64,000 bases of DNA from sequence record MZ444140.1. One strand, given 5' to 3'. Shown here one piece after another: positions 12,375 to 53,418 of the stretch. Under the pieces are notes generated by a model that had not been told where the DNA came from, searched no databases, and was given only the letters and a program-made list of their open reading frames with translations. Position 1 is the stretch's first letter. The number at the start of each line of letters is the position of its first letter. The position numbers and the translations under genes were made by a program.

Positions 12375-12879
12375 CAGAGTCGATCATCTCACGAGCATCA
12401 CCGATGGGAGTATCAGGGTGCTCACGCTCGGTTGCTTTAGCCACGTGTTCAATTGCAACTGGAGACCATCGAGCGGCGACAGCCTCACATACACCGATCG
12501 AATTCACTCTACGGATCATATGTGCACCAGTATCAATTACACTGAAACTGAGTTCACTAATAATTTCCACTCCTTTTAGTTTATCGATACTATCAATAAC
12601 CTGCGTACTAATTAGATAATTAGCTGTATCGTTATTATACGCAAGCACTAGTTTGAAACTCATTAGGGAGTTATCTTTATCGGTGTCCCCAGCGATTAAC
12701 TCATGATTTGAAGTGAGTGTATAGATACAACTACTCTCCTGAGCAGTAATTGGTGATCCTGGTGAAGAACTATATACACTAGGTGCATTAGCTGTATTTA
12801 GTGCAAACTTATTTACAGTGGAATTAGCGCCAGGAACTTTATAACCAATAGGTCTGGCAGTGAAAATTACAACGCTCAT
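12325..12879 (-). CDS. Hypothetical early protein, 184 aa
   Basis: SD AGAGGA; lies directly downstream of a TATATTAC promoter. Confidence 0.7.
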   Translation of the reverse strand: MSVVIFTARPIGYKVPGANSTVNKFALNTANAPSVYSSSPGSPITAQESSCIYTLTSNHELIAGDTDKDNSLMSFKLVLAYNNDTANYLISTQVIDSIDKLKGVEIISELSFSVIDTGAHMIRRVNSIGVCEAVAARWSPVAIEHVAKATEREHPDTPIGDAREMIDSGEDLGDVCTSYIKSSN

Positions 12880-12924: not shown

Positions 12925-12950
12925 GTAATATAAATCTCAAATTTTTTTTA
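12925..12950 (-). promoter_or_regulatory. phiKZ-type early (vRNAP) promoter
   Basis: Minus strand TAAAAAAAATTTGAGATTTATATTAC. TATATTAC is the phiKZ early consensus as I recall it, and this site aligns with two more copies at 38330 and 38846. Confidence 0.8.
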
Positions 12951-12962
12951 ATACGAAATAAA

Positions 12963-12980
12963 GCCTCCCCGAAGGGAGGC
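12963..12980 (-). terminator. Hairpin terminator
   Basis: GCCTCCC-cgaa-GGGAGGC directly after the Tad1-like gene. Confidence 0.8.
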
Positions 12981-12987
12981 ATTTATG

Positions 12988-13680
12988 TCAATTACCACTA
13001 TAGGTACCTTCAGTACCTTGTTCTTTACGTCTTACGAGGCGTTGATGAATTGCACTAAGAGCACGGTCCATTGAATTAATCACTACCTGATTCTCTTCAC
13101 ATGCAAATGGGCCTGCTTGATAACCTTCAAATAAATCTTTAACGATTTTAAGTAGACAGTCAGCAGTTAGGCCATTTACACCAACTTCTGGAACAAGTCC
13201 ATTCTGCATTAGGATAACACATTCAGTCAGATTATCACCAGGCATAGCAGCTGGGTTAGTCTGAGCATTATAACCAGTTACCACATAACGTTTAGTTGCA
13301 CCTGATTTCTGATCAATACCACTTGCTTCAATATTTAGACCATTTTCATCAAAATGTTCATGGCCATAAATACCTTGCATAGTTACCCATCCACCATCTT
13401 CTTGATAAATCCAATCTACCCCATTTACATGATAAGTATCACCTGGTTCAGGGTCAGTTGGAAGATCTTTAGTAGTGGTTAATGCACGGATACGCGCATA
13501 TTCTTCAATTGCAATTTGTACATCAGTTGCAGTAATTTTCTTCTCAGGTTCAGTAGCTTCATCTTGTTGAGACTTATCGCTACCTTCCTTTTGATCATTA
13601 TCCATATCGGAAGAATCTACTGTACTTTTAGCTTCTTTACTTTCTAAGGAAGCTAACCACTCAAGATTAGGTTTAGACAT
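12988..13680 (-). CDS. tad1: Tad1-family anti-Thoeris/anti-CBASS nucleotide sponge with ~105-aa N-terminal extension (gp184-like), 230 aa
   Basis: C-terminal LNIEASG..SGATKRYVV...ILMQNG..PEVGVNGLT..CLLKIVKDLFEGYQAGPFACEEN...HQRLVRRKEQGTEGT matches the Tad1 signature (FQ.G...G...LL.IV.DRL..FQ.GPF..REN..AL...R...R....G). The start is moved to the ATG at 13680, which follows SD GAGGT. Confidence 0.85.
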   Translation of the reverse strand: MSKPNLEWLASLESKEAKSTVDSSDMDNDQKEGSDKSQQDEATEPEKKITATDVQIAIEEYARIRALTTTKDLPTDPEPGDTYHVNGVDWIYQEDGGWVTMQGIYGHEHFDENGLNIEASGIDQKSGATKRYVVTGYNAQTNPAAMPGDNLTECVILMQNGLVPEVGVNGLTADCLLKIVKDLFEGYQAGPFACEENQVVINSMDRALSAIHQRLVRRKEQGTEGTYSGN

Positions 13681-13687
13681 ACTTACC

Positions 13688-13993
13688 TCAATAAATGAAA
13701 CCACCAATGTAAAGTGACACTACTACATCGGCAACCCGAGGGTCTTGTGAATATTTAGATTTGACTAGTTTAATAAGTTCGGCTCGATTTTTAATGAAGC
13801 CTAGTTTCTTATTATCAATTTCTTCAGCTTTAATTAGGAAGTCATCTAACTTCTTCTTACTACCCAGTAAATTAATCACCATTTGATCAATAACTGCATT
13901 AGAATTTGATAGTTTAGTTAATTCTTGTTCAAAAACTTCCTTACGTCCTTCTGATCCAATTAAAGCTAGACCGATCTTTTTAAGTAGAGACAT
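13688..13993 (-). CDS. Hypothetical helical protein, 101 aa
   Basis: ORF track; SD AGGT; its stop lies 7 nt before the Tad1-like start, so the two are probably co-transcribed. Confidence 0.65.
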   Translation of the reverse strand: MSLLKKIGLALIGSEGRKEVFEQELTKLSNSNAVIDQMVINLLGSKKKLDDFLIKAEEIDNKKLGFIKNRAELIKLVKSKYSQDPRVADVVVSLYIGGFIY

Positions 13994-14051: not shown

Positions 14052-22815
<8,764 letters not shown>

Positions 22816-22890
22816 ATTAAACTCCATTGACGATTAGTAAAGTATCATATCGTTGTTTAACTTAGTATTACCAAAATAGGAAAATAGAAA

Positions 22891-24546
22891 ATGAAGAAGG
22901 CATTAGTTCCTTTTAATATTTCTTTACTTATTCCTACTAAAGAACAATTAAAGTTCTTAGGTCAAGTAAAGAGTCATGAGATATTTGAAGGTTTAGGTGG
23001 TAACTTTCATGAAGATGGTTTGTTCTCTGTTTCCATTTTTGGAAGAGTTGGATCAACTGATCGTGAGAGTTTATTTGGATATATCCATTTAGGTTTAGAA
23101 CTTATCCATCCAGTTGTATATCGAAACTTAATTAAATTAAAAGCTTTCTATGAAGAAATTATTCTTGGTAAGGCATTTGCAGTATTTGATGAATCTATTA
23201 AAGATTTTATCCGCGCTGATGAACTAACTGGTAAAACTGGTTATACATTCTTTTTTGATAACTGGAAACGAATTGACTTTGGGACCACTAAGTCAGGGAT
23301 TCGGCTATCAAGGTTACAATTAATCGAAAAATATAAAGATAACTGTATTTTTAAAGACATGATTGTAACACCTGCTGCTTATCGTGATGCAGAGATTGAT
23401 GAGAATAATCGTGTTGAGATGGATGAGGTCAATGAACATTATAGATATCTATTAAATCAGTCGTTTGGTGTACCTGACAGTTTTGGACCAAACGATGACT
23501 TGAGTATCTATGATCGCAAACGAGTAGCGATGCAAAATACAGTATTAGCTATTTATGAACATTATGAAAGGTTATTAGCAGGTAGTAAACGAGGTTATAT
23601 CCAATCTAAATGGGCATCCCGTCGTATTGCCAATGGTACCCGTAACGTCATTAGTTCGCTAGATACTAATGCGGCTGATCTTGATTCACCTAATCGACCA
23701 ACATTCAAAGATGCCGTAGTTGGCTTACATCAAGCAGCTCGTTCAGTTGCACCGCGTACAATCTTTGCACTAAGGCAAGGTGTAGTTGGTGAAGTGTTTG
23801 ATACAGTTACTAACACTGTACAGCTCATCAATAAGAAAACACTACGTTTAGAATGGGTCGATATCTCTAACGAAGATATGGATTTATGGGGAACTCCTGA
23901 AGGGCAAGAACAAATCATCAATGAGCTAGATGTCATTGAAAAACGCTCACGTGCAATTGAAATTGCTGATCATTATCTAGCCCTTATTTACGTTGATGAT
24001 AAACAGAATTTTAAAATATTCCGCAACATCGATGAGTTACCTACTAATCTAAATAAGAAATTTGTTAGACCTATTACTTATGCCGAATTAGTTTACCTTA
24101 GTGGATTAAGTATGTGGCGAACAAACTCAGCGTTTGTTACACGATATCCTGTAGAAAACTACAATAGCTCTATCCCCTGTAAGATGTATGTTAAAACAAC
24201 CGTAGTGGGTGAATTACGTTATCCGTTAAATGATCAATGGGAACGTGATGATACGTTGGAACCAGCCTTAGAATTCCCTGTGTTTGAATTAAATAAACCA
24301 GCCCAGTGGCATGACTCAGTATCCATCTCTCCTTCTATTCTCGCGCCATTGGGGGCGGATTTCGACGGGGACACTGTATCATTTAACGCAGTTTATTCAG
24401 AGGAAGCTATCGCTGAAACAGATGCTTTCTTTAAGAAACGTATTGCATATATACATGCCGATGGTCGACTGGCATTTAGTGTTGGTGTCCATACACTCAA
24501 TTTAACTCTTCGGTACATGACTGGGGAACCCAAACAAAGGGATTAA
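22891..24546 (+). CDS. rpoC: Virion RNA polymerase beta-prime subunit, catalytic part (gp180-like), uninterrupted
   Basis: N-terminal FHEDGLFSVSIFG motif; Mg-binding GADFDGD at residues ~488-494. Confidence 0.92.
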   Translation: MKKALVPFNISLLIPTKEQLKFLGQVKSHEIFEGLGGNFHEDGLFSVSIFGRVGSTDRESLFGYIHLGLELIHPVVYRNLIKLKAFYEEIILGKAFAVFDESIKDFIRADELTGKTGYTFFFDNWKRIDFGTTKSGIRLSRLQLIEKYKDNCIFKDMIVTPAAYRDAEIDENNRVEMDEVNEHYRYLLNQSFGVPDSFGPNDDLSIYDRKRVAMQNTVLAIYEHYERLLAGSKRGYIQSKWASRRIANGTRNVISSLDTNAADLDSPNRPTFKDAVVGLHQAARSVAPRTIFALRQGVVGEVFDTVTNTVQLINKKTLRLEWVDISNEDMDLWGTPEGQEQIINELDVIEKRSRAIEIADHYLALIYVDDKQNFKIFRNIDELPTNLNKKFVRPITYAELVYLSGLSMWRTNSAFVTRYPVENYNSSIPCKMYVKTTVVGELRYPLNDQWERDDTLEPALEFPVFELNKPAQWHDSVSISPSILAPLGADFDGDTVSFNAVYSEEAIAETDAFFKKRIAYIHADGRLAFSVGVHTLNLTLRYMTGEPKQRD

Positions 24547-24548
24547 TC

Positions 24549-27500
24549 ATGCGCTTAAATATTACACAGTTTCTGAAAAATTATAGTGTACGCGAATATG
24601 CTAAACTTCAGTCACCTAAGTTGCATGCTCTAAATAAACTTGATCTACCTTTCGAATCCATTTATCAGTTCTTCGATGGTAATAATGCAGTAATGGGTCC
24701 TAGTCAAACAGACCCATTATTCTCCAAACATCAAGGTAAAGTATATATTGAGCATGTTACTGATATGCTTACATTTGAAGGTAATCCACGTAGGACTTCA
24801 AATATCCCAGCAACAATGATTCAAGAGTTTCGCCGCCAGAACCGTTTCTTTAAACCTTTACGCAGTGATACCGGTTTTAAATTATCAAACCAGAACATTC
24901 TGGTAATGAATTATAATTTAATTAACCCTCAATGGAATTATATGGCTTCTTATAAAGCTACATGGTTCCGTTGGTCAAATGACATGCGTACATTCTGGAG
25001 TGGCGTAGCGGCTGCATGTGAACGTTTTCCTGGTTGGAACCAGTTCATTGATGTACACTTACCTGAGTTAGTTCCACCTCCTTCTTCTTTTAATAAACTA
25101 CGAGGGGGTTTAACTCAAGATCTAGCTAATCAATTCAATACACCTGATATTCTAAATATATTTGATTTAGTTCGCTGGGTTTCTGATGATCGTGAAAGTT
25201 CTTTCATGAATGTCATCGATGCTAAGTATTACGGTAACATTAATCTTTTATTCCGTGTACAAAGTTCATTCTTTGTTATTAACTTAGGGATGCTTGATCA
25301 ATGGCGTCGTGATCCAGAAATTAAAGATGATAAAGGTTATGATACCCAGCAAATAGCTAGGCGCCTTATTTCACTAGTATCAGCGATGGTTGAATATAAC
25401 CAAGGTAATACTTCATTAATTAAAGAAGATACGCCTATCTTTAATGAAGATATTATTGTTGATGAAGAAACTCCGGTTAGTTATGAAGAAGGTGAAGCAG
25501 AAGAGGTTGAGGATGTTGAGTCTAATAACGTTGAAGAAGAAGTAACTGAAGTTGATGTTATTGATGATGTTCAATTTGACCCAACCAACTTAACTAACTT
25601 AATTGATATTGGCGCAATTGAGGTAACATATACCCCACCACCAGAAAGTGATCTTGAGGTAACAAAGCTTATCATTGAAAAAGATCCACTGGAATCTTCA
25701 CCTTCTCGCCAAATTAAAGAAGAGAAGGAACTCATTGTAACAGATGTACCAGAAGATGAGTTATTCATCAATACTGAAGTTGATGAAGAAGATAAACTAA
25801 TCGATGCCATTAGAGCTAAAGCATACGACATGTATCGCGTGAATATGATTTCTGCGAATACATTCGAGCAAGCTCAAGAAGATTCGATTATGTATCGTCG
25901 TCTACCTGATCCATTTACCGATCCTAATGATGAATCAGTAGAACCTATGACGATCGCTGAGGCGATGGAATATCATCCAGATGATCTTAAGATTCCAGAA
26001 GACACCACTTTTGAAGATAAGCCAACCATTGTTGATAAATCAATGTTGGGTAGTAAGTTAAAAGCCATCCAACGCAAATACAACAAGGTCTTATTAAAGA
26101 AAGATATTTTAAACAGTGTGTTATCTGTTCAGAAACAAGGCGTATCAGTAACTAATTACAAAATTGAAACTGTACGCGATTCTGGTAACCATTACCAAAT
26201 CCACAAAGTTACATTAAAGCCTATTCGTGGTAGAAGTTCACAAGTAATGTTCCGTATCCCTGTCATTGATAATGACGGTAGGTTCATGTCTAATGGGGTA
26301 ACATATCGCCAACGTTTACAACGTGCTGATATTCCAATTCGTAAAGTTAATCCACGTAAAGTTGCATTGACCTCTTATTATAATAAGACCTTTGTGACCA
26401 GATCTGAACGTGCTGAAAACAACTTTGATAATTGGTTAATCAGAGCGATTACCAACCGTGCATTAGATGGAAGTGATATGTCTGTACATTCAGTTACCTA
26501 TGCTGAATTAGATCAATCCAACTATGTTCTACCAAGGGTGTACACTACTTTAGGAACAGCTTTTAAAGGCTTCCATAATCACCGTAATGTGTTCTATTTT
26601 AATTTCAAAGATCGTAATGAATTCTTTGCAAAACAAGGATTACATATCGAAGATTATGAAACTGATGATTTGATAATGGTGGGGTTCAATGGCACTGATG
26701 CTATCTTGTTAGATAAGAATTCCATCTTTTACATGAAAACAGGTAATGAGCTAGAACCTATTGGTACCATTACAGATATACTTGGCTTAGATCTAACCAA
26801 AGCGCCGTTAGAAGCTATTCTAATGTCAATTGGTGGTAAAGAGCTACCATTAGGTTTCATTTTAGCATATCACCATGGCTTAAACAATCTACTTAAGAAG
26901 TTGAATGTTAATTATCAGCGTCATCAGCGTGGCACCAGGATTGTTGTCAATAGTACGGATTATACATTAGCGTTCGCTGATGAGATCCTAGTATTTGATC
27001 GAGCTGATTATAAAGCAATGCTTGTATTAAGTGGACTCAAGCGTTATCATAAATCACTGCGGCGTTATTCTGTTTATGATTTCAATAAACGAGATGTTTA
27101 CTTCAGGGTTCTTGAAGAAGCTGGATTAAGTAATAGATTTACACGTGATATTGATACACTCTTCTCAGCATGGGTCGATCCAATCACTGAGGGTCTACTC
27201 AAGGAGATGGGTGAACCAACTACTTTTGAAGGATTGCTTTATCGGTCTGTCGAGTTATTAACGAACGACTGGAGTCCAGCAGAAGTAGATGGTGCATATA
27301 TGCGCTATCGTGGTTATGAGCGCATGGCAGGGGCTATTTTTAATGAACTCAATAGAGCGGTACGTGTATTTAATATGCGTAATGGTGGGTCAGTGCAAAC
27401 TGTCGAGTTAGATCCACACGTGATCTGGCGCAAGATTGTACAAGATCCGACAGTAGCCACTATTGAAGATTCTAACCCCATTGCAAATATCCGTGAACAA

Positions 27501-31543: not shown

Positions 31544-32356
31544 ATGCAACCATATTCTAATTTTTCTGGTTTGCAACAGCGTACTAATAACCAAGTAGTT
31601 ATCGGCAGTGATATGTTAGCCGGTACTAATAAAAAAGGTGTATTAGTACCTGATGCGGATGGTTACTATCTAACTCCACTAGGAGCTTATGGTACCCGAA
31701 ATTCAGCTGGTATGTTCTATGAAATGGCATCCGGCGTATCTATGTTTAATCCAGACTCACCTTTAATGCGCCGTGTTAAAAAGGGTGTTCTATTCATGGA
31801 ATACAAACACCCTGAACCCTATCGTAAAGATGGCACACGGATGAATGAACATGAGTACCTAATGCGAATTCGTCAAATCGATGATGATCGTGTGTGTGCG
31901 CATATTAAGGAACTTATTCTGGTTGATTCTACAGATGAGAAAGGTCTTCCTATTAAACTAGTACTTGGCAAATGCAAACCATACGGTCCTTTTGGTAAGT
32001 ACTTCGAAGCATCTATTACCAATCCTTCTCAGAATACTTATTGCTCGGTAAGGTCAATAACTCAAGATGATCCTATGCGCGGTATCAAATATACCCGTGA
32101 GATTTCAACTTGGGATATGGTTGGGGAAGGTGGTATTTACGGTGCTAATAAATGGAATTCCCCTGCATTAGAGAACTATGAAGATCAATTAATGGTTATC
32201 ACGCCTGATACTCTATATCAGGTACAGCGTGAACGTGAACGTCAAATTAACATGGGTTTTGAATGTTCTGATATCACCAATGTGACAGATCTAGCGAAAA
32301 GTCTTGGCTGGGATATTTCACCAGTTAAACATAGGCGCCCTGGCTTCATGCGTTAA
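31544..32356 (+). CDS. Prohead protease (gp175-like), 270 aa
   Basis: His motif FMEYKHP, Ser motif CSVRS and Asp motif TWDMV of herpes/T4-gp21-like serine proteases; SD AAGGAG. Confidence 0.88.
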   Translation: MQPYSNFSGLQQRTNNQVVIGSDMLAGTNKKGVLVPDADGYYLTPLGAYGTRNSAGMFYEMASGVSMFNPDSPLMRRVKKGVLFMEYKHPEPYRKDGTRMNEHEYLMRIRQIDDDRVCAHIKELILVDSTDEKGLPIKLVLGKCKPYGPFGKYFEASITNPSQNTYCSVRSITQDDPMRGIKYTREISTWDMVGEGGIYGANKWNSPALENYEDQLMVITPDTLYQVQRERERQINMGFECSDITNVTDLAKSLGWDISPVKHRRPGFMR

Positions 32357-36353: not shown

Positions 36354-36869
36354 ATGTTCCATGGTGCAGATTTATCTGATGAGCCTTTAGAAAAGAAATC
36401 ATCAACTACAGAAGAAAAGGTATATGCTGATCTAGAATATGAGCAGCAGATACGGTATACACAATCAGTTAAAGAGAAAGTACTAAAAGCTGTATTAGAA
36501 AATACAACTGGTAAAGTACCTACTGATAAAGAATCAGTTGATATGATTCTTAAATTAACAGATTCAATGGATAAGACAACAATTGCTAACCGTCGTATTC
36601 AAGTTGATTCTGAGGGTGCACGCTCTAACCGTGAACTTGCTGAAGGCTTTGCTGAATTCGTTAAGATGCAAATGAACCGTAATCCATTAATACGTGATCC
36701 GAATGATGTCCCTGCAACACCACGTGAGATTCCAGATATTCCTGATGAGGAATTTGAGAATTACACTATTGAAGAAGGTGAAACTGAAATCGGTATCATC
36801 ATGGAGGAATCCAATGCATTTATGGAGCGGATGGATGCTGCACGAGAAAAAGAATTAGAAAACGATTGA
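36354..36869 (+). CDS. Hypothetical acidic helical protein (gp169-like), 171 aa
   Basis: SD AGAGGA; ends at a convergent hairpin. Confidence 0.7.
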   Translation: MFHGADLSDEPLEKKSSTTEEKVYADLEYEQQIRYTQSVKEKVLKAVLENTTGKVPTDKESVDMILKLTDSMDKTTIANRRIQVDSEGARSNRELAEGFAEFVKMQMNRNPLIRDPNDVPATPREIPDIPDEEFENYTIEEGETEIGIIMEESNAFMERMDAAREKELEND

Positions 36870-36884
36870 TATTAACGACATATA

Positions 36885-36905
36885 GCCCTCCCGTAATGGG
36901 AGGGC
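36885..36905. terminator. Bidirectional hairpin at convergent junction
   Basis: GCCCTCCC-gtaat-GGGAGGGC, identical over 21 bp to 32377-32397. Confidence 0.85.
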
Positions 36906-36914
36906 GTTATGCAC

Positions 36915-37613
36915 TTAATACAAATCGATATCTAATACATCACCAACTGTATTTACGATTACTTCAACAGGTGGTAGCTCAATATTACCAATTGATTTCT
37001 TAATAACATTCATTTGGTTAATAACTTGATTATGATCAGATGTTACTTTAAGAGCTAATAGTCCAATAGCAGTTAAACTTACGATTGCAGTTGAGTTATC
37101 TGAAATAGTTTCATATGCAGCTTTACCTACTTTCTTAATAGTTTTAAATAGAGTAGGTTTATTTTGACGAATTAGTTTTCGTTCTTTTGCTTTAGCTAGC
37201 TCATCATCAAATTCTTTATTAAAGCTACGGCGTTTACTCCAATCATAAACACCTGGTGAAACTTCTTCAAAATTGGAAGAGATTGCACCAAAATCACTAG
37301 CATGGCTAAACATCCATTTAAAGATAAAGCGATTAGAAAGAACCCACGCCTGTAGATTAGTTTCTGCATCGTTGATTAGTTTAATAGCATCGCTTCCAGT
37401 AGCCACTTGGCCATTAGCTTTAACAAATAAAATCAGTCTTACAGTAGTACCATTGATTACTGTGTTATTCACATTTGCAATCCTGGTATAAATTTCTTTA
37501 ATAATTCGCTTTTGTTTATCTAAATCAGCACCATTTAAACGAATATTAAATTGACGGTCTAATACGGCCATTGCAGTTTCCTCTAGGGTTATTGTACCTA
37601 AAGTATACTGCAT
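36915..37613 (-). CDS. Early hypothetical protein, 232 aa, with a C-terminal hydrophobic segment
   Basis: Third gene after the 38330 promoter; hydrophobic AIVSLTAIGLLAL. Confidence 0.65.
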   Translation of the reverse strand: MQYTLGTITLEETAMAVLDRQFNIRLNGADLDKQKRIIKEIYTRIANVNNTVINGTTVRLILFVKANGQVATGSDAIKLINDAETNLQAWVLSNRFIFKWMFSHASDFGAISSNFEEVSPGVYDWSKRRSFNKEFDDELAKAKERKLIRQNKPTLFKTIKKVGKAAYETISDNSTAIVSLTAIGLLALKVTSDHNQVINQMNVIKKSIGNIELPPVEVIVNTVGDVLDIDLY

Positions 37614-37620
37614 GACCGTA

Positions 37621-38049
37621 TTATTTTAATTTTTTACATGCTTTATAAAACCGTGTACCAACGTACAAAATAAACCCGCCAATAACAGCAACTGATGTGA
37701 TTGTTTCCAGCGGCATGCGCTTAGCGGGTTCTTCAATTGGTACTGTAACAGCTGGTAATTCAATTCTTTTCTCAATAACTTTTTTACCAGTTAACTTATA
37801 ATAAACATCTGGTTCTAATGTTATCGATTCAAGAATCTGATTACTACATGGATAGCGTGTGACGCCTCCATGTCCATCTGCAACATAGAAGCTGAATGTA
37901 TCGCCTACACGATGTAAGTCAACCACACTACCCATATATGTCATATGAGCTGGATAGAGTTCTGCCTTGACCTTTCCATCGTTGAATAAGTCAATGACGG
38001 AACTCTTCTTTAGCTCACCCATTAAGTTTGCTAAAGTGAATGCCGCCAT
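37621..38049 (-). CDS. Early hypothetical protein, 142 aa, with a C-terminal membrane anchor
   Basis: ITSVAVIGGFILYVG followed by a basic tail. Confidence 0.65.
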   Translation of the reverse strand: MAAFTLANLMGELKKSSVIDLFNDGKVKAELYPAHMTYMGSVVDLHRVGDTFSFYVADGHGGVTRYPCSNQILESITLEPDVYYKLTGKKVIEKRIELPAVTVPIEEPAKRMPLETITSVAVIGGFILYVGTRFYKACKKLK

Positions 38050-44072: not shown

Positions 44073-45641
44073 CTATTCAGTTTCCTTGATTTCACTATCA
44101 ACTAGTTTCTCAAGTACGGTGATCCAGATCATCACACATTTAAACAGATCATTACTAGCTTCAGTGGTGCCAGTTAGATAAGCCTTACCAACATTGGTTG
44201 CTTCTTTATCAGTCATCTGTGCAATGATTTCAGCAGTTGACTCTTTAGAGATACCGCGAATATTATTTAGATGATTTAGGAGGTTATGAACTGCTTTTAG
44301 CTGAGCCATAACAACATTCTTATCAACTAATAGTTCAACAGTAATTCCATAGTTGGGTTTACCCGGTGCATCAAGAATGGAGAAGTCTACCGCAGCTTTG
44401 TCTTTACCAAAGGTATAAACACGATTACCGGGCACAACCGGGCTAGCATATCGGACACCATTAGCATTAATTTTGGTAGCTGTTCCAAACATACCTTTAG
44501 CTAAAGCCAGTGCTTTATCATCAGTTGTTTTTCCAGCTAAGGCTGCTTTAAGAGCACGCAGTCCATTCTTTTCAATGCTGTCAAATAGATTACGGATTAC
44601 AGTAACCCCCTGAACAGGGTCTACACCAACCCAACTCTCACCAGTGTCACCTAGAATCAGATCGCGTGGAATTGCGATAGTACGAACTTCATCGGGTAGT
44701 TCATTCTCTTTAACGCGTTTCATGATCTTATTAACGCGTTCTATTTGATTACTGACATTCTGGCGAATACGTTGATAAGTTTCTACAACAATGCGAATTA
44801 GCTTCTTAATGAAATCTAATGCAACAGTAGATACTTCTTTTGCTTTAGCTTGTAGATTATCTAATACTTCAATAGAAGCTTTAGGCCGAGTTAGCGGTGA
44901 TATAAAGGATTCCATTGATGGCACAGTGTTATTAAAATATTTATAGTCAAATGACTCTAGCGCGATGCTAATAGCTTTAGCTAGATCATGATCGACATCA
45001 TGCCCGCGATGATGGCGGTTACTAACTAAACCAATATAGTTTTCTAATGCAGTTTGAACAGATTCTACTTTAGTCAGTTCATTTACAATTGTAAACATTT
45101 CAACTGATAATGATTCTAGATGATCATCTAGTTCACCAGTGATGATATCTTCAGTAGTTTCCAGTAGTGCGGTGGCATCATAGCCATGGTCTAGCTGCTC
45201 AGTCTCATTGGCTTCCATAATAGAAATGTCTTCATTCGATGGGACATCTGCAATTTGGTGTGGTTTTTTGGTACTAACATTAAGATCTTTAGTATCACTT
45301 ACTTTAGTGATCATTTCATCAGCTGTTTCAGTGATTTCGTTTTCAACACGATCACCTTTAGCTACTTGGAATTCTTTTAGCCCTTGACTAACATGAATCT
45401 TCTTATCATTGATCTTATCAGCAGTTCCATCAACATCTGGACCTTTGCATACGTCAATTGGGGTATTGGTAACGACATTGGTAACTTCATCACATGGATT
45501 TACTTTACCATCTTCATCATCTTTTAATTGTTCTGGTAATTCTTTACCAACATCAAGATTGACATTCTTATCTTCAGCATCAGAAACGCGCTCAAGACTT
45601 GCAAAGAAATCCATTGCGGGAACTGTTTTTTTCTTAGCCAT
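44073..45641 (-). CDS. Internal head/ejection protein with long acidic propeptide (gp162-like)
   Basis: Multiple S/A-X-E sites (ASLE, ALE, IALES, SME) in the N-terminal half. Confidence 0.75.
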   Translation of the reverse strand: MAKKKTVPAMDFFASLERVSDAEDKNVNLDVGKELPEQLKDDEDGKVNPCDEVTNVVTNTPIDVCKGPDVDGTADKINDKKIHVSQGLKEFQVAKGDRVENEITETADEMITKVSDTKDLNVSTKKPHQIADVPSNEDISIMEANETEQLDHGYDATALLETTEDIITGELDDHLESLSVEMFTIVNELTKVESVQTALENYIGLVSNRHHRGHDVDHDLAKAISIALESFDYKYFNNTVPSMESFISPLTRPKASIEVLDNLQAKAKEVSTVALDFIKKLIRIVVETYQRIRQNVSNQIERVNKIMKRVKENELPDEVRTIAIPRDLILGDTGESWVGVDPVQGVTVIRNLFDSIEKNGLRALKAALAGKTTDDKALALAKGMFGTATKINANGVRYASPVVPGNRVYTFGKDKAAVDFSILDAPGKPNYGITVELLVDKNVVMAQLKAVHNLLNHLNNIRGISKESTAEIIAQMTDKEATNVGKAYLTGTTEASNDLFKCVMIWITVLEKLVDSEIKETE

Positions 45642-52503: not shown

Positions 52504-53418
52504 TTATCCAATGATTTCACGAAGAATATCTTCAGTGGCTTTCATTGTGTTCGCAGTCTCAACAATCTTAGTAAAGAGTGTTGAATAACGTTCAACATGG
52601 TCTGCTGCCCATGTAACCCCTTCAATTAATGTCTGTAACAGCTCTGGAGAGGTGTCAGAGTTACTATCCTTAACATCCTCCATAAAGCTATCAATTAATT
52701 GACTAAGCGCTTCTGAAGCACGTTTTACATCATTTGGACGAACCCGTGATAAAATGCTACGAATATCGTTCATTTTCTTTGTTGCGTCAACAAATGAATT
52801 TAATGATGGGTAAAGCTTACCAAACTCAGCTGTACTTGACCGGTTGTCACTGTCATAGAAAGAAGCATCTTTAGCAAGATCATTGATCGATGCCATTGCA
52901 AATGAATTAGCAAAGCCACGCTTATCCATTCGATCAGCACGCTGTTGTAGATAATATCCAAGTTGTGCTTTAACCGGGTCTAATACCGCTGGAATAATAG
53001 TGGCCATTTCCTTAGCTTCTGTTAATAGATAATCAACATAGTCTGGAATCTCACCATTAAAACCAACTGGTTGTGGCACGATTGTATTTGCTACTTCTAA
53101 ATAATCAATGTGTGAAACTAAATGGCGCATCTGCGCTGGATGGAACTCAGGAATAATTTGATTACTCCAGTTAGTCATCGACGTAAATGCATTACGAGCA
53201 GCGATAGCAAAATTAGCACCGCGTTTATTGATAATGTTAATAGCGTTTGTTGCGAAATTAGCTTCTTGAGAAATAGTCTCAGTAATATCTACAAGCTGTT
53301 GTTTTGGATCAACTTGTACTAAACTAATATCATCATTAACAATATTGTCAGATTCAATTAGATCCTGACAATCATTTTCTAGTGAAATACTTTTAGCGTA
53401 TTTATGGATGTTAAACAT
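52504..53418 (-). CDS. Internal head protein (gp153-like), 304 aa
   Basis: N-terminal SISLE processing motif; SD AAGGA. Confidence 0.72.
   Translation of the reverse strand: MFNIHKYAKSISLENDCQDLIESDNIVNDDISLVQVDPKQQLVDITETISQEANFATNAINIINKRGANFAIAARNAFTSMTNWSNQIIPEFHPAQMRHLVSHIDYLEVANTIVPQPVGFNGEIPDYVDYLLTEAKEMATIIPAVLDPVKAQLGYYLQQRADRMDKRGFANSFAMASINDLAKDASFYDSDNRSSTAEFGKLYPSLNSFVDATKKMNDIRSILSRVRPNDVKRASEALSQLIDSFMEDVKDSNSDTSPELLQTLIEGVTWAADHVERYSTLFTKIVETANTMKATEDILREIIG

Follow-up and report, generated by a model that had tools for sequence, protein, structure and literature searches.

The gene at positions 12988..13680 (minus strand) of the 64,000 nt stretch of MZ444140.1 that we analysed (the window) encodes gp184 of phage phiKZ. 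The combined evidence makes it very likely that its product is a three-part virion protein, consisting of an N-terminal leader, a capsid-bound piece and a C-terminal Tad1 sponge, which is packaged into the head and injected into the host. The capsid-packaged, protease-trimmed and injected Tad1 sponge is already known, and the sequence-only reading of this locus, which had left open whether such a protein had been reported, rediscovered a published system. A sponge delivered together with the DNA lets the phage blunt Thoeris and CBASS before any phage protein is made, which is conceptually important but has already been described for gp184. Our analysis adds the placement of the capsid-bound piece at residues 60-112, between two protease-type motifs, and the observation that N-terminally extended Tad1 proteins are both common and diverse.

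The CDS comprises 230 codons and a stop, running from an ATG at 13680 to a stop codon at 12988-12990, with a GAGG ribosome-binding site 5' of the gene. These limits are exactly those given in the sequence-only reading, which had left the strand unstated; the gene lies on the minus strand. The 230 aa product matches phiKZ gp184, present as chain I in PDB 8y6v, at 100% identity. At the DNA level, the gene is 99.86% identical to PHIKZ184 (annotated 'structural protein'), with a single, synonymous difference from the phiKZ reference across its 693 bases, and DNA identity to phiKZ and PA7 is 99.9-100%. The protein is, thus, that of phiKZ gp184/Tad1 itself, encoded at the same genome position and with no difference at the protein level.

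The gp184 gene lies beside virion genes. Immediately upstream, in the same unit, is the gene encoding gp183 (101 aa; 13688..13993, minus strand), which is preceded by the gene for gp182 (664 aa; 14052..16046, minus strand), a match to a PHROG annotated as a virion structural protein; the position of gp184 after these two genes had been correctly described from the letters alone. Beyond them lies gp181, a tail-associated endolysin by phiKZ annotation, for which the ORF from the first ATG encodes 2241 aa (16102..22827, minus strand) and the phiKZ-annotated CDS aligns to 16102-22815. The gp182-gp183-gp184 unit is bracketed by two terminator-like hairpins on the minus strand, one between gp181 and gp182 (16067..16094) and one 7 nt past the gp184 stop (12963..12980), the latter with a 7-bp stem that contains six G-C pairs and is followed by a T-run. 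Between the gp184 terminator and the start of gp185 at 12879 is TATATTAC (12925..12932, minus strand), which as a bare 8-mer is not enriched in the window (7 observed vs 6.7 expected). The order of a gp181-like gene, a gp182-like gene, one or more small genes and a long Tad1 gene is kept in PhiPA3, where there are two small genes, and in a metagenomic phage contig of 310 kb, where there is one. The window also carries the gene for the gp175 prohead protease (31544..32356, plus strand), the enzyme reported to process gp184 (PMC11297242), and its DNA is 100% identical to that of phiKZ. No other part of the window was found to encode a paralogue of the leader, of the wall-bound piece or of the Tad1 domain.

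Scans of gp184 against Pfam-A and NCBIfam returned no significant family, and the Tad1 assignment therefore relied on sequence and fold searches against the PDB; precomputed matches to PF24729 (Acb2_Tad1_hairpin) are present on close gp184 homologues. Besides the protein itself, phmmer retrieved Tad1 chains alone from the PDB (8kbb, 8kbh, 8kbg, 7uav and 8kbe; E-values of 2e-6 to 4e-6), with the match covering gp184 residues 117-226. A family profile built from 27 sequences likewise found Tad1 chains only, at E-values of 7e-13 to 1.6e-10. Foldseek, which had been proposed as a check, was queried with the AlphaFold2 model of gp184 and placed only Tad1 structures at ranks 1-20, each with a probability of 1.00 and with target-normalised TM-scores of 0.58-0.71. 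The model contains strands at residues 116-122, 129-135 and 153-159 and helices at 173-189 and 195-220, and this combination of a beta-sheet and two C-terminal helices corresponds to the published description of the Tad1 fold. The agreement between phmmer, profile and Foldseek bears out the Tad1 pattern recognized earlier in the C-terminal part of the protein, and confirms, at the level of sequence and predicted structure, that residues ~116-227 form a Tad1 domain. In the model, the domain (residues 116-227; 13000..13335, minus strand) starts with an antiparallel beta-sheet and ends with two long helices. It should be noted that a word-indexed protein search with the C-terminal domain found jumbo-phage long forms only, and that an exhaustive profile search was needed for the wider family, which numbers 4431 representatives.

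The N-terminal region of gp184 has a different character. Residues 1-59 (13504..13680, minus strand) form an acidic, predicted-disordered and propeptide-like leader: residues 1-60 contain 16 D/E vs 7 K/R, and pLDDT is below 50 across residues 1-63 of the AlphaFold2 model, in keeping with the acidic, low-complexity stretch noted previously. The three S/A-x-E motifs listed in the sequence-only reading are all present. The first, S11-L12-E13 (13642..13650, minus strand), is a candidate gp175 site at which 24 of 27 relatives carry S/G-x-E; together with A10 it makes up the same A-S-L-E string as the documented 17|18 cleavage site of gp162. The two documented cuts in gp162, 17|18 and 137|138, read S-L-E|R and S-N-E|D. 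The second, A42-T43-E44 (13549..13557, minus strand), is a candidate motif common to the closest relatives only. The third, A57-I58-E59 (13504..13512, minus strand), is a candidate site just N-terminal of the capsid-bound piece, and the phiKZ-like subgroup shares S/A-x-E at this alignment column. Two further motifs, S-K-E at residues 14-16 and G-H-E at 106-108, were absent from the earlier list. The number of S/A/G-x-E motifs in residues 1-113 of gp184 is not above chance (5 observed vs 2.5 expected, P = 0.075), so we used positional conservation instead of counts to weigh the candidate sites.

Between the leader and the sponge is a small module of beta-strands (residues 60-112; 13345..13503, minus strand) that contains the part of gp184 visible on the inner wall of the capsid: 34 residues, modelled as chain I of PDB 8y6v from the capsid cryo-EM map. 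When residues 60-112 were modelled on their own, the result could be superposed on each of these 34 residues (100% identity, rmsd 1.9 A, TMt 0.83), and we therefore rejected the idea that the resolved residues are part of the Tad1 beta-sheet. In the model of full-length gp184, the same region forms strands with a pLDDT of about 75, and it is flanked by A-I-E59 and G-H-E108. Structural work has located gp184 on the inner capsid surface within the vertex-binding complex, at one copy per complex, with the resolved piece wedged in between gp86 and the middle of the vertex-adjacent hexamer (PMC11297242). The 34-residue piece is visible in DNA-filled heads, and the modelled part of gp184 is described as shorter than the proteolytic product owing to flexibility (PMC11297242). 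These observations modify the interpretation of the N-terminal part as a head-protease propeptide: residues 1-59 are leader-like and carry the motifs, but the N-terminal part as a whole is not merely disposable, as a 34-residue piece of it is fixed in the wall.

Because the 34-residue piece within residues 60-112 stays in the wall, the sponge domain would either be tethered there or be freed by a further cut. A candidate gp175 site, G106-H107-E108 (13357..13365, minus strand), lies in the linker that joins the wall-bound piece to Tad1 and is predicted to be disordered. We would give roughly even chances to a cut at this site that detaches the sponge from the wall-bound piece. Linker residues 103-112 have a pLDDT below 50, and 19 of 27 relatives carry G/S-x-E immediately ahead of the Tad1 domain. 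The alternative, in which cleavage occurs at E13 and/or E59 only, so that Tad1 and the wall-bound piece remain one covalent chain and the sponge leaves the head only because that piece is pulled out at ejection, is a serious contender that falls a little short of an even chance. The wording of Yang 2024 on the modelled part and the product fits a product of residues 60-230, and the sites picked out in the sequence-only reading (E13, E44 and E59) all lie upstream of the wall-bound piece. However, the disordered setting of G-H-E108 argues against a permanent tether, as does the occurrence of the motif at this position even in relatives that have no wall-bound piece. Furthermore, the piece that would have to be pulled out is still present in DNA-filled heads, and Chan 2025 has the C-terminus liberated by the head protease.

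The passage of gp184 from capsid to host has been followed in several studies. Yang 2024 (PMC11297242), citing Thomas 2012, lists a verified gp175 cleavage site for gp184. Fossati 2023 (PMC10449902) detected injection of C-terminally 3xFLAG-tagged gp184 into translation-blocked cells by western blot (n = 1); in the supplements of that study, gp184 appears only in the plasmid, primer and blot files and in the source-data protein table. In the account of Chan 2025 (bioRxiv 10.1101/2025.11.23.690004), the N-terminus of 'gp184/Tad1' is wedged into the capsid, whilst the C-terminus is liberated by the head protease and injected, and gp184 is non-essential and dispensable for growth. For the name gp184/Tad1, both Chan 2025 and a 2026 review cite Li 2024, and gp184 is the sole AntiDefenseFinder match in phiKZ. 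The contents that phiKZ injects are reported to enter an early-infection vesicle. The proposal, made from the letters, that this protein is loaded into the capsid, matured by gp175 and delivered at injection matches published work at each step (PMC11297242, PMC10449902, bioRxiv 10.1101/2025.11.23.690004), whereas its possible newness does not hold, as the packaged sponge had already been published for gp184.

We propose the following sequence of events. The protein would be made with the virion genes and loaded into the prohead, where the gp175 protease would trim the leader at S/A-x-E sites, leaving a piece within residues 60-112 wedged between gp86 and the hexamer centre in the mature head. 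At the next infection, the C-terminal part of gp184 would enter the host with the DNA, and the injected Tad1 domain (residues 116-227) may then soak up immune second messengers ahead of phage gene expression, with Thoeris gcADPR and the cyclic dinucleotides of CBASS bound in its dimer-interface pocket. From one copy per vertex-binding complex, we infer about 55-60 copies of gp184 per head. By simple arithmetic, the dose would be small and come to roughly 0.1 micromolar for a cell volume of ~1 fL. In the proposed scheme, it would presumably be the injected dose of gp184, not newly made protein, that matters.

A different weighting of the same facts would make gp184 mainly a late cytoplasmic sponge that is made afresh, with its capsid presence and the few injected copies being a by-product of a cementing role and contributing little to counter-defence. 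We regard this as unlikely. It draws on the single copy per vertex-binding complex, from which a small injected dose follows, on the structural role suggested by the gap-filling position of the resolved piece between gp86 and the capsid subunit, and on the many stand-alone cytoplasmic proteins among the relatives, which make up 71 of the nearest 150 cluster representatives. However, a protein that is dispensable for growth is no essential cement, and the C-terminal part of gp184 is injected. The architecture of leader plus Tad1 beside virion genes is, moreover, kept across phage genera, which argues for selection on packaging.

The pocket residues of gp184 are consistent with a Tad1 sponge. 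In an alignment read against published residue lists, the pocket stretch (13027..13122, minus strand) carries Y187, N197, R214 and R218, which correspond to F82, N92, R109 and R113 of the CbTad1 pocket for gcADPR and cyclic dinucleotides, as well as E195 and N202. The four pocket positions are nearly invariant by column counts across 174 relatives, and the asparagine and both arginines are invariant in 27 jumbo-phage relatives. E195 and N202 replace R90 and T97 of the CbTad1 cyclic-trinucleotide pocket, and the hexamer-interface residues M102 and W103 of CmTad1 are likewise not kept, being S209 and A210 in gp184; we would, therefore, not expect gp184 to be equivalent to CbTad1 and CmTad1 in every respect. 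The trinucleotide-pocket arginine is present in 12 of 72 stand-alone relatives and in 0 of 86 N-extended ones. Given this rarity, we treat the trinucleotide-pocket Arg/Thr and the hexamer interface as a putative trait of the subgroup to which the crystallised CbTad1 and CmTad1 belong, not of the whole family. As relayed by papers that cite it, Li et al. 2024 (Nature 635:719) reported that phiKZ Tad1 binds gcADPR or cyclic nucleotides and blocks both Thoeris and CBASS; phiKZ is absent from the preprint version of 2023. It is very improbable that gp184 ends in a degenerate Tad1 fold that has lost the ability to bind immune signals and whose sole role is that of an internal head protein. Although gp184 lacks the trinucleotide-pocket and hexamer-interface residues of the crystallised homologues, it retains all four residues of the gcADPR/dinucleotide pocket in a family where they hardly vary, and the reported anti-CBASS and anti-Thoeris activity points the same way.

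The architecture of gp184 has counterparts in the wider family. Of the 150 nearest Tad1 cluster representatives, 63 are extended at the N-terminus by 60 aa or more and have the sponge at the very C-terminus, and these extensions fall into several unrelated groups. In one of the groups, from uncultivated jumbo phages, the extension is similar to the region of the jumbo-phage major capsid protein that holds its insertion domain; six extended Tad1 proteins carry such a piece. All of the extended forms that we saw, gp184 included, are without the trinucleotide-pocket arginine, and packaged Tad1 proteins may therefore be dimers that take gcADPR and dinucleotides only. This leads us to speculate on a generality that may be new in a way that gp184 itself is not. 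It is possible, if somewhat doubtful, that the extensions are head-targeting modules, in which case a cytoplasmic sponge would have been recruited as virion cargo several times over, and that packaged Tad1 proteins are dimeric sponges restricted to these ligands.

In its overall logic, gp184 resembles the internal proteins of phage T4 such as IPI*, an anti-defence protein with a cleavable N-terminal leader that is loaded into the head and injected with the DNA. IPI* is unrelated to gp184 in sequence and acts by direct inhibition of a restriction enzyme, not by sequestration of a signal, and we know of no wall-bound capsid piece in the T4 internal proteins. In fold, the closest characterised proteins are CbTad1, from a Clostridium botulinum prophage (7uav, 7uaw, 8smd, 8kbe-8kbh), and CmTad1 (8kbb-8kbd), which share with gp184 the F/Y, N, R, R pocket at a sequence identity of only about 20-25%. 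Their PDB chains are 123-138 aa long, in agreement with the earlier figure of ~125 aa for characterised Tad1 proteins, and have no N-terminal extension, whereas gp184 adds 115 residues of leader and wall-bound piece. The PhiPA3 gene 217 product and 201phi2-1 gp280 are nearer in architecture: like gp184, they have an acidic leader, S/G-L-E near residue 13 and a C-terminal Tad1 domain, and they are encoded at the same position, after gp181-like and gp182-like genes. These PhiPA3-type proteins are ~190-205 aa long and lack the wall-bound piece, with an alignment gap at gp184 residues ~77-102. Within the phiKZ head itself, the injected gp175 substrates gp93, gp162, gp153 and gp163 have N-terminal S/A/G-x-E sites and, as in gp184, a piece bound to the inner capsid surface with the rest unresolved (PMC11297242). 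These proteins have helix-rich inner-body folds, whereas gp184 carries a small-molecule sponge domain.

The gene is a single ORF on the minus strand (ATG at 13680, stop at 12988-12990) with a GAGG ribosome-binding site upstream and a product of 230 aa. Full-length gp184 showed 100% identity to chain I of PDB entry 8y6v ('gp184'), and its phiKZ counterpart, PHIKZ184, is annotated as 'structural protein'. The surrounding DNA showed 100% identity to that of Pseudomonas phage PA7 and 99.9% to that of phiKZ, so the window belongs to a Pseudomonas aeruginosa jumbo phage of the phiKZ type. The protein is the published phiKZ gp184/Tad1 itself, not just one that resembles Tad1 and those phiKZ head proteins that undergo processing.

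Consistent with the context originally described, gp184 directly follows gp182 and gp183 on the minus strand (succession gp181, gp182, gp183, gp184), and terminator-like hairpins bound gp182-gp184 upstream (16067-16094) and downstream (12963-12980). None of the genes considered is disrupted. The octamer TATATTAC, which had been taken as an early-promoter mark, is found at 12925-12932, between the downstream hairpin and gp185. As a bare 8-mer it was not enriched in the window (7 observed versus 6.7 expected from shuffles), and at this chance frequency it marks nothing alone. The order of a gp181-like giant protein, a gp182-like protein, one or more small genes and a long Tad1 was also observed in PhiPA3 (gene 217; two small genes) and in a 310-kb metagenomic contig (one small gene). 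Elsewhere, the HNH endonuclease gene gp179 of phiKZ (L005, a locus outside the window, 36661-37734; Pfam HNH_3, E 7e-9) is missing from the window phage. The gap lies between the gp180 and gp178 genes (24361-24549), where the gp180 reading frame is ~60 codons longer and stops just before the gp178 start; gp179 looks like a mobile endonuclease insertion that is present in phiKZ but not in the window phage.

The Tad1 pattern noticed in the C-terminal half of gp184 proved to be real, and more than a pattern, as sequence search, family profile and fold all gave Tad1. A single-sequence search of the PDB with gp184 returned, besides itself, only Tad1 chains (8kbb, 8kbh, 8kbg, 7uav and 8kbe; E 2e-6 to 4e-6, residues 117-226), and a profile of 27 relatives again matched Tad1 chains only (E 7e-13 to 1.6e-10). 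The AlphaFold2 model of gp184 had a mean pLDDT of 60.7, with ~57-90 (10-residue blocks) over most of residues 116-227 and <50 at 165-167. In the modelled domain, three strands precede two long helices, an architecture that matches the published description of Tad1 (Li et al.). The structural check with Foldseek against the PDB agreed, the best 20 matches all being Tad1 structures (probability 1.00, target-normalised TM-score 0.58-0.71). A local Pfam-A scan found no family for gp184 or its homologues P0001-P0026, and Pfam-based annotation would probably miss the gp184 Tad1. Precomputed annotations assign PF24729 (Acb2_Tad1_hairpin) to most of the P0001-P0026 set, labelled 'weak' for some.

Ligand-pocket residues were mapped by HMMER alignment of gp184 to CbTad1, a crystallised stand-alone Tad1, together with the residue list given by Li et al. 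The CbTad1 pocket for gcADPR and cyclic dinucleotides (F82, N92, R109, R113) corresponds to Y187, N197, R214 and R218 of gp184, positions that are nearly invariant among 174 relatives. At the cyclic-trinucleotide pocket, R90 and T97 of CbTad1 correspond to E195 (codon 13096-13098, minus strand) and N202 (codon 13075-13077, minus strand), which replace the Arg and Thr by which CbTad1 and the crystallised CmTad1 hold cyclic trinucleotides. In gp184, S209 and A210 stand in place of M102 and W103, which are hexamer contacts in CmTad1. Of 72 stand-alone relatives, 12 have the trinucleotide-pocket arginine; all 86 relatives with an N-terminal extension lack it. As the dinucleotide-pocket residues are kept and the trinucleotide-pocket residues are not, gp184 is predicted from its sequence to be a sponge for gcADPR and dinucleotides, and the alignment offers no support for a trimer-of-dimers trinucleotide site.

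The N-terminus was as the sequence-only reading described it: residues 1-60 are acidic (16 acidic versus 7 basic) and predicted to be disordered in the AlphaFold2 model, and the three motifs listed for the prohead protease gp175 (gene at 31544-32356, plus strand) are present, namely S-L-E 11-13, A-T-E 42-44 and A-I-E 57-59. Two further motifs of this kind, S-K-E 14-16 and G-H-E 106-108, were found. The motif count alone was not significant (5 observed versus 2.5 expected from shuffles, P = 0.075). The positions, however, are conserved: among 27 relatives, the S/G-x-E motif at the E13 position is kept in 24, and 19 carry G/S-x-E just ahead of the Tad1 domain. The S/A/G-x-E rule for the head protease was confirmed by Fossati et al. 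2023 (PMC10449902), and gp162 (44073-45641, minus strand) is cut at the residue junctions 17|18 and 137|138 (quoted by Yang et al., PMC11297242). In the window sequence these sites read S-L-E before R and S-N-E before D, so both documented cuts follow S-x-E, which validates the motif rule within the same window. The A-S-L-E preceding the first gp162 cut (residues 14-17) is identical to residues 10-13 of gp184 (13642-13653, minus strand), and gp153 (52504-53418, minus strand) has S-L-E at residues 12-14. These motifs suggest that gp162, gp153 and gp184 share a short N-terminal leader that may be cut at the same place.

The proposal of a simple N-terminal propeptide needs refinement, as a wall-fixed module lies within residues 60-112. 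Only 34 residues are modelled in 8y6v chain I, the Tad1 domain being invisible in the icosahedral map, and gp184 residues 60-112 modelled alone superposed on all 34 (100% identity, rmsd 1.9 A, TMt 0.83). What is fixed to the capsid wall is therefore a small beta-strand module that sits after the leader and before the Tad1 domain. A-I-E59 and G-H-E108 flank this module on either side, the latter within a linker predicted to be disordered (residues 103-112, AlphaFold2). The sponge either remains attached to the wall-bound piece or is released by a cut at E108. We consider the chances of such a cut to be about even; it would fit the wording of Chan et al., that the C-terminus is liberated by the head protease, and the retention of G/S-x-E before the domain in relatives that lack the wall-bound piece.

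The inference that a packaged, protease-matured sponge is injected matches published work step by step; the reasoning from raw sequence was correct, and the system was already known. Yang et al. (PMC11297242) described gp184 as occupying the space that separates gp86 from one subunit of the neighbouring hexamer, and stated that its gp175 cleavage site had previously been verified and that large parts were unresolved. Injection of C-terminally 3xFLAG-tagged gp184 into cells with blocked translation was validated by Fossati et al. 2023 (PMC10449902). Chan et al. 2025 (bioRxiv 10.1101/2025.11.23.690004), who cite Li et al. 2024 (Nature 635:719), named the gene orf184/tad1, found it dispensable, and reported that the N-terminus is wedged into the capsid while the C-terminus is liberated by the head protease and injected at the next infection. 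Tad1 is the sole phiKZ match listed in the AntiDefenseFinder paper. phiKZ does not feature in the 2023 Li et al. preprint.

Taken as a whole, gp184 is very probably a packaged, gp175-trimmed, wall-locked and injected sponge. It would be produced alongside the virion genes and enter the prohead, where gp175 would trim it at S/A/G-x-E sites and residues within 60-112 would become locked in place between gp86 and the hexamer next to each vertex. During the following infection, the C-terminal Tad1 domain would exit with the DNA and bind gcADPR and cyclic dinucleotides. From five copies per vertex we infer 55-60 copies per head, which is ~0.1 micromolar in a cell of ~1 fL by arithmetic. In the main alternative, newly made cytoplasmic gp184 would do most of the work, with the injected copies a minor addition, which we regard as unlikely. 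The early-infection vesicle has been mentioned in a review as the site of cargo release.

An exhaustive profile search recovered 4431 cluster representatives at E <= 1e-3, and architecture was counted on the best 150. Stand-alone Tad1 accounted for 71 of these and 16 were extended at the C-terminus; N-terminally extended forms were common, with 63 carrying at least 60 aa ahead of a domain placed at the very C-terminal end. By similarity, these N-terminal extensions fall into several unrelated groups, including the acidic phiKZ/PhiPA3 type. One group of six proteins from uncultivated phages (P0048, P0081, P0087, P0090, P0092 and P0105, the last at L011:165-1940) has a major-capsid-like N-terminus: the first ~130-180 residues match jumbo-phage major head proteins ('major head protein' PHROG), with Pfam PhiKZ_MCP matches at E 1.6e-19 to 3.9e-24 in the three members scanned. 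In P0087 (L002:10001-11455, on a 252-kb metagenomic contig), residues 15-196 match residues ~219-432 of the 719-aa major head protein of Ralstonia phage RP12, a stretch that corresponds roughly to the phiKZ insertion-domain region (Yang et al., PMC11297242). No phage in the GenBank collection carried the whole capsid-like and Tad1 fusion. Scanned members of an eleven-member group and several smaller ones matched only PHROGs of unknown function or none. It is possible, though we hold it only tentatively, that capsid delivery of Tad1 was invented repeatedly via different N-terminal modules. The extended architecture has another cultured case in gp131 of Burkholderia phage FLC9 (L007:3404-4420), an isolated 322-kb jumbo phage; this 338-aa protein has its Tad1 domain at ~210-337 and no PHROG match in its N-terminal 200 residues. 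A 280-aa N-terminally extended Tad1, P0043, was also seen on a 40-kb non-jumbo phage contig (L010:5523-6365), where it lies directly upstream of genes for a terminase small subunit and a T7-type portal; for its extension, the sole matches were to PHROGs of unknown function.

Compared with the crystallised stand-alone Tad1 proteins, gp184 adds a 115-residue N-terminal part, and the trinucleotide-pocket and hexamer residues of those proteins are not conserved in it. Unlike the PhiPA3-type long forms, gp184 has a beta-strand wall-bound piece.
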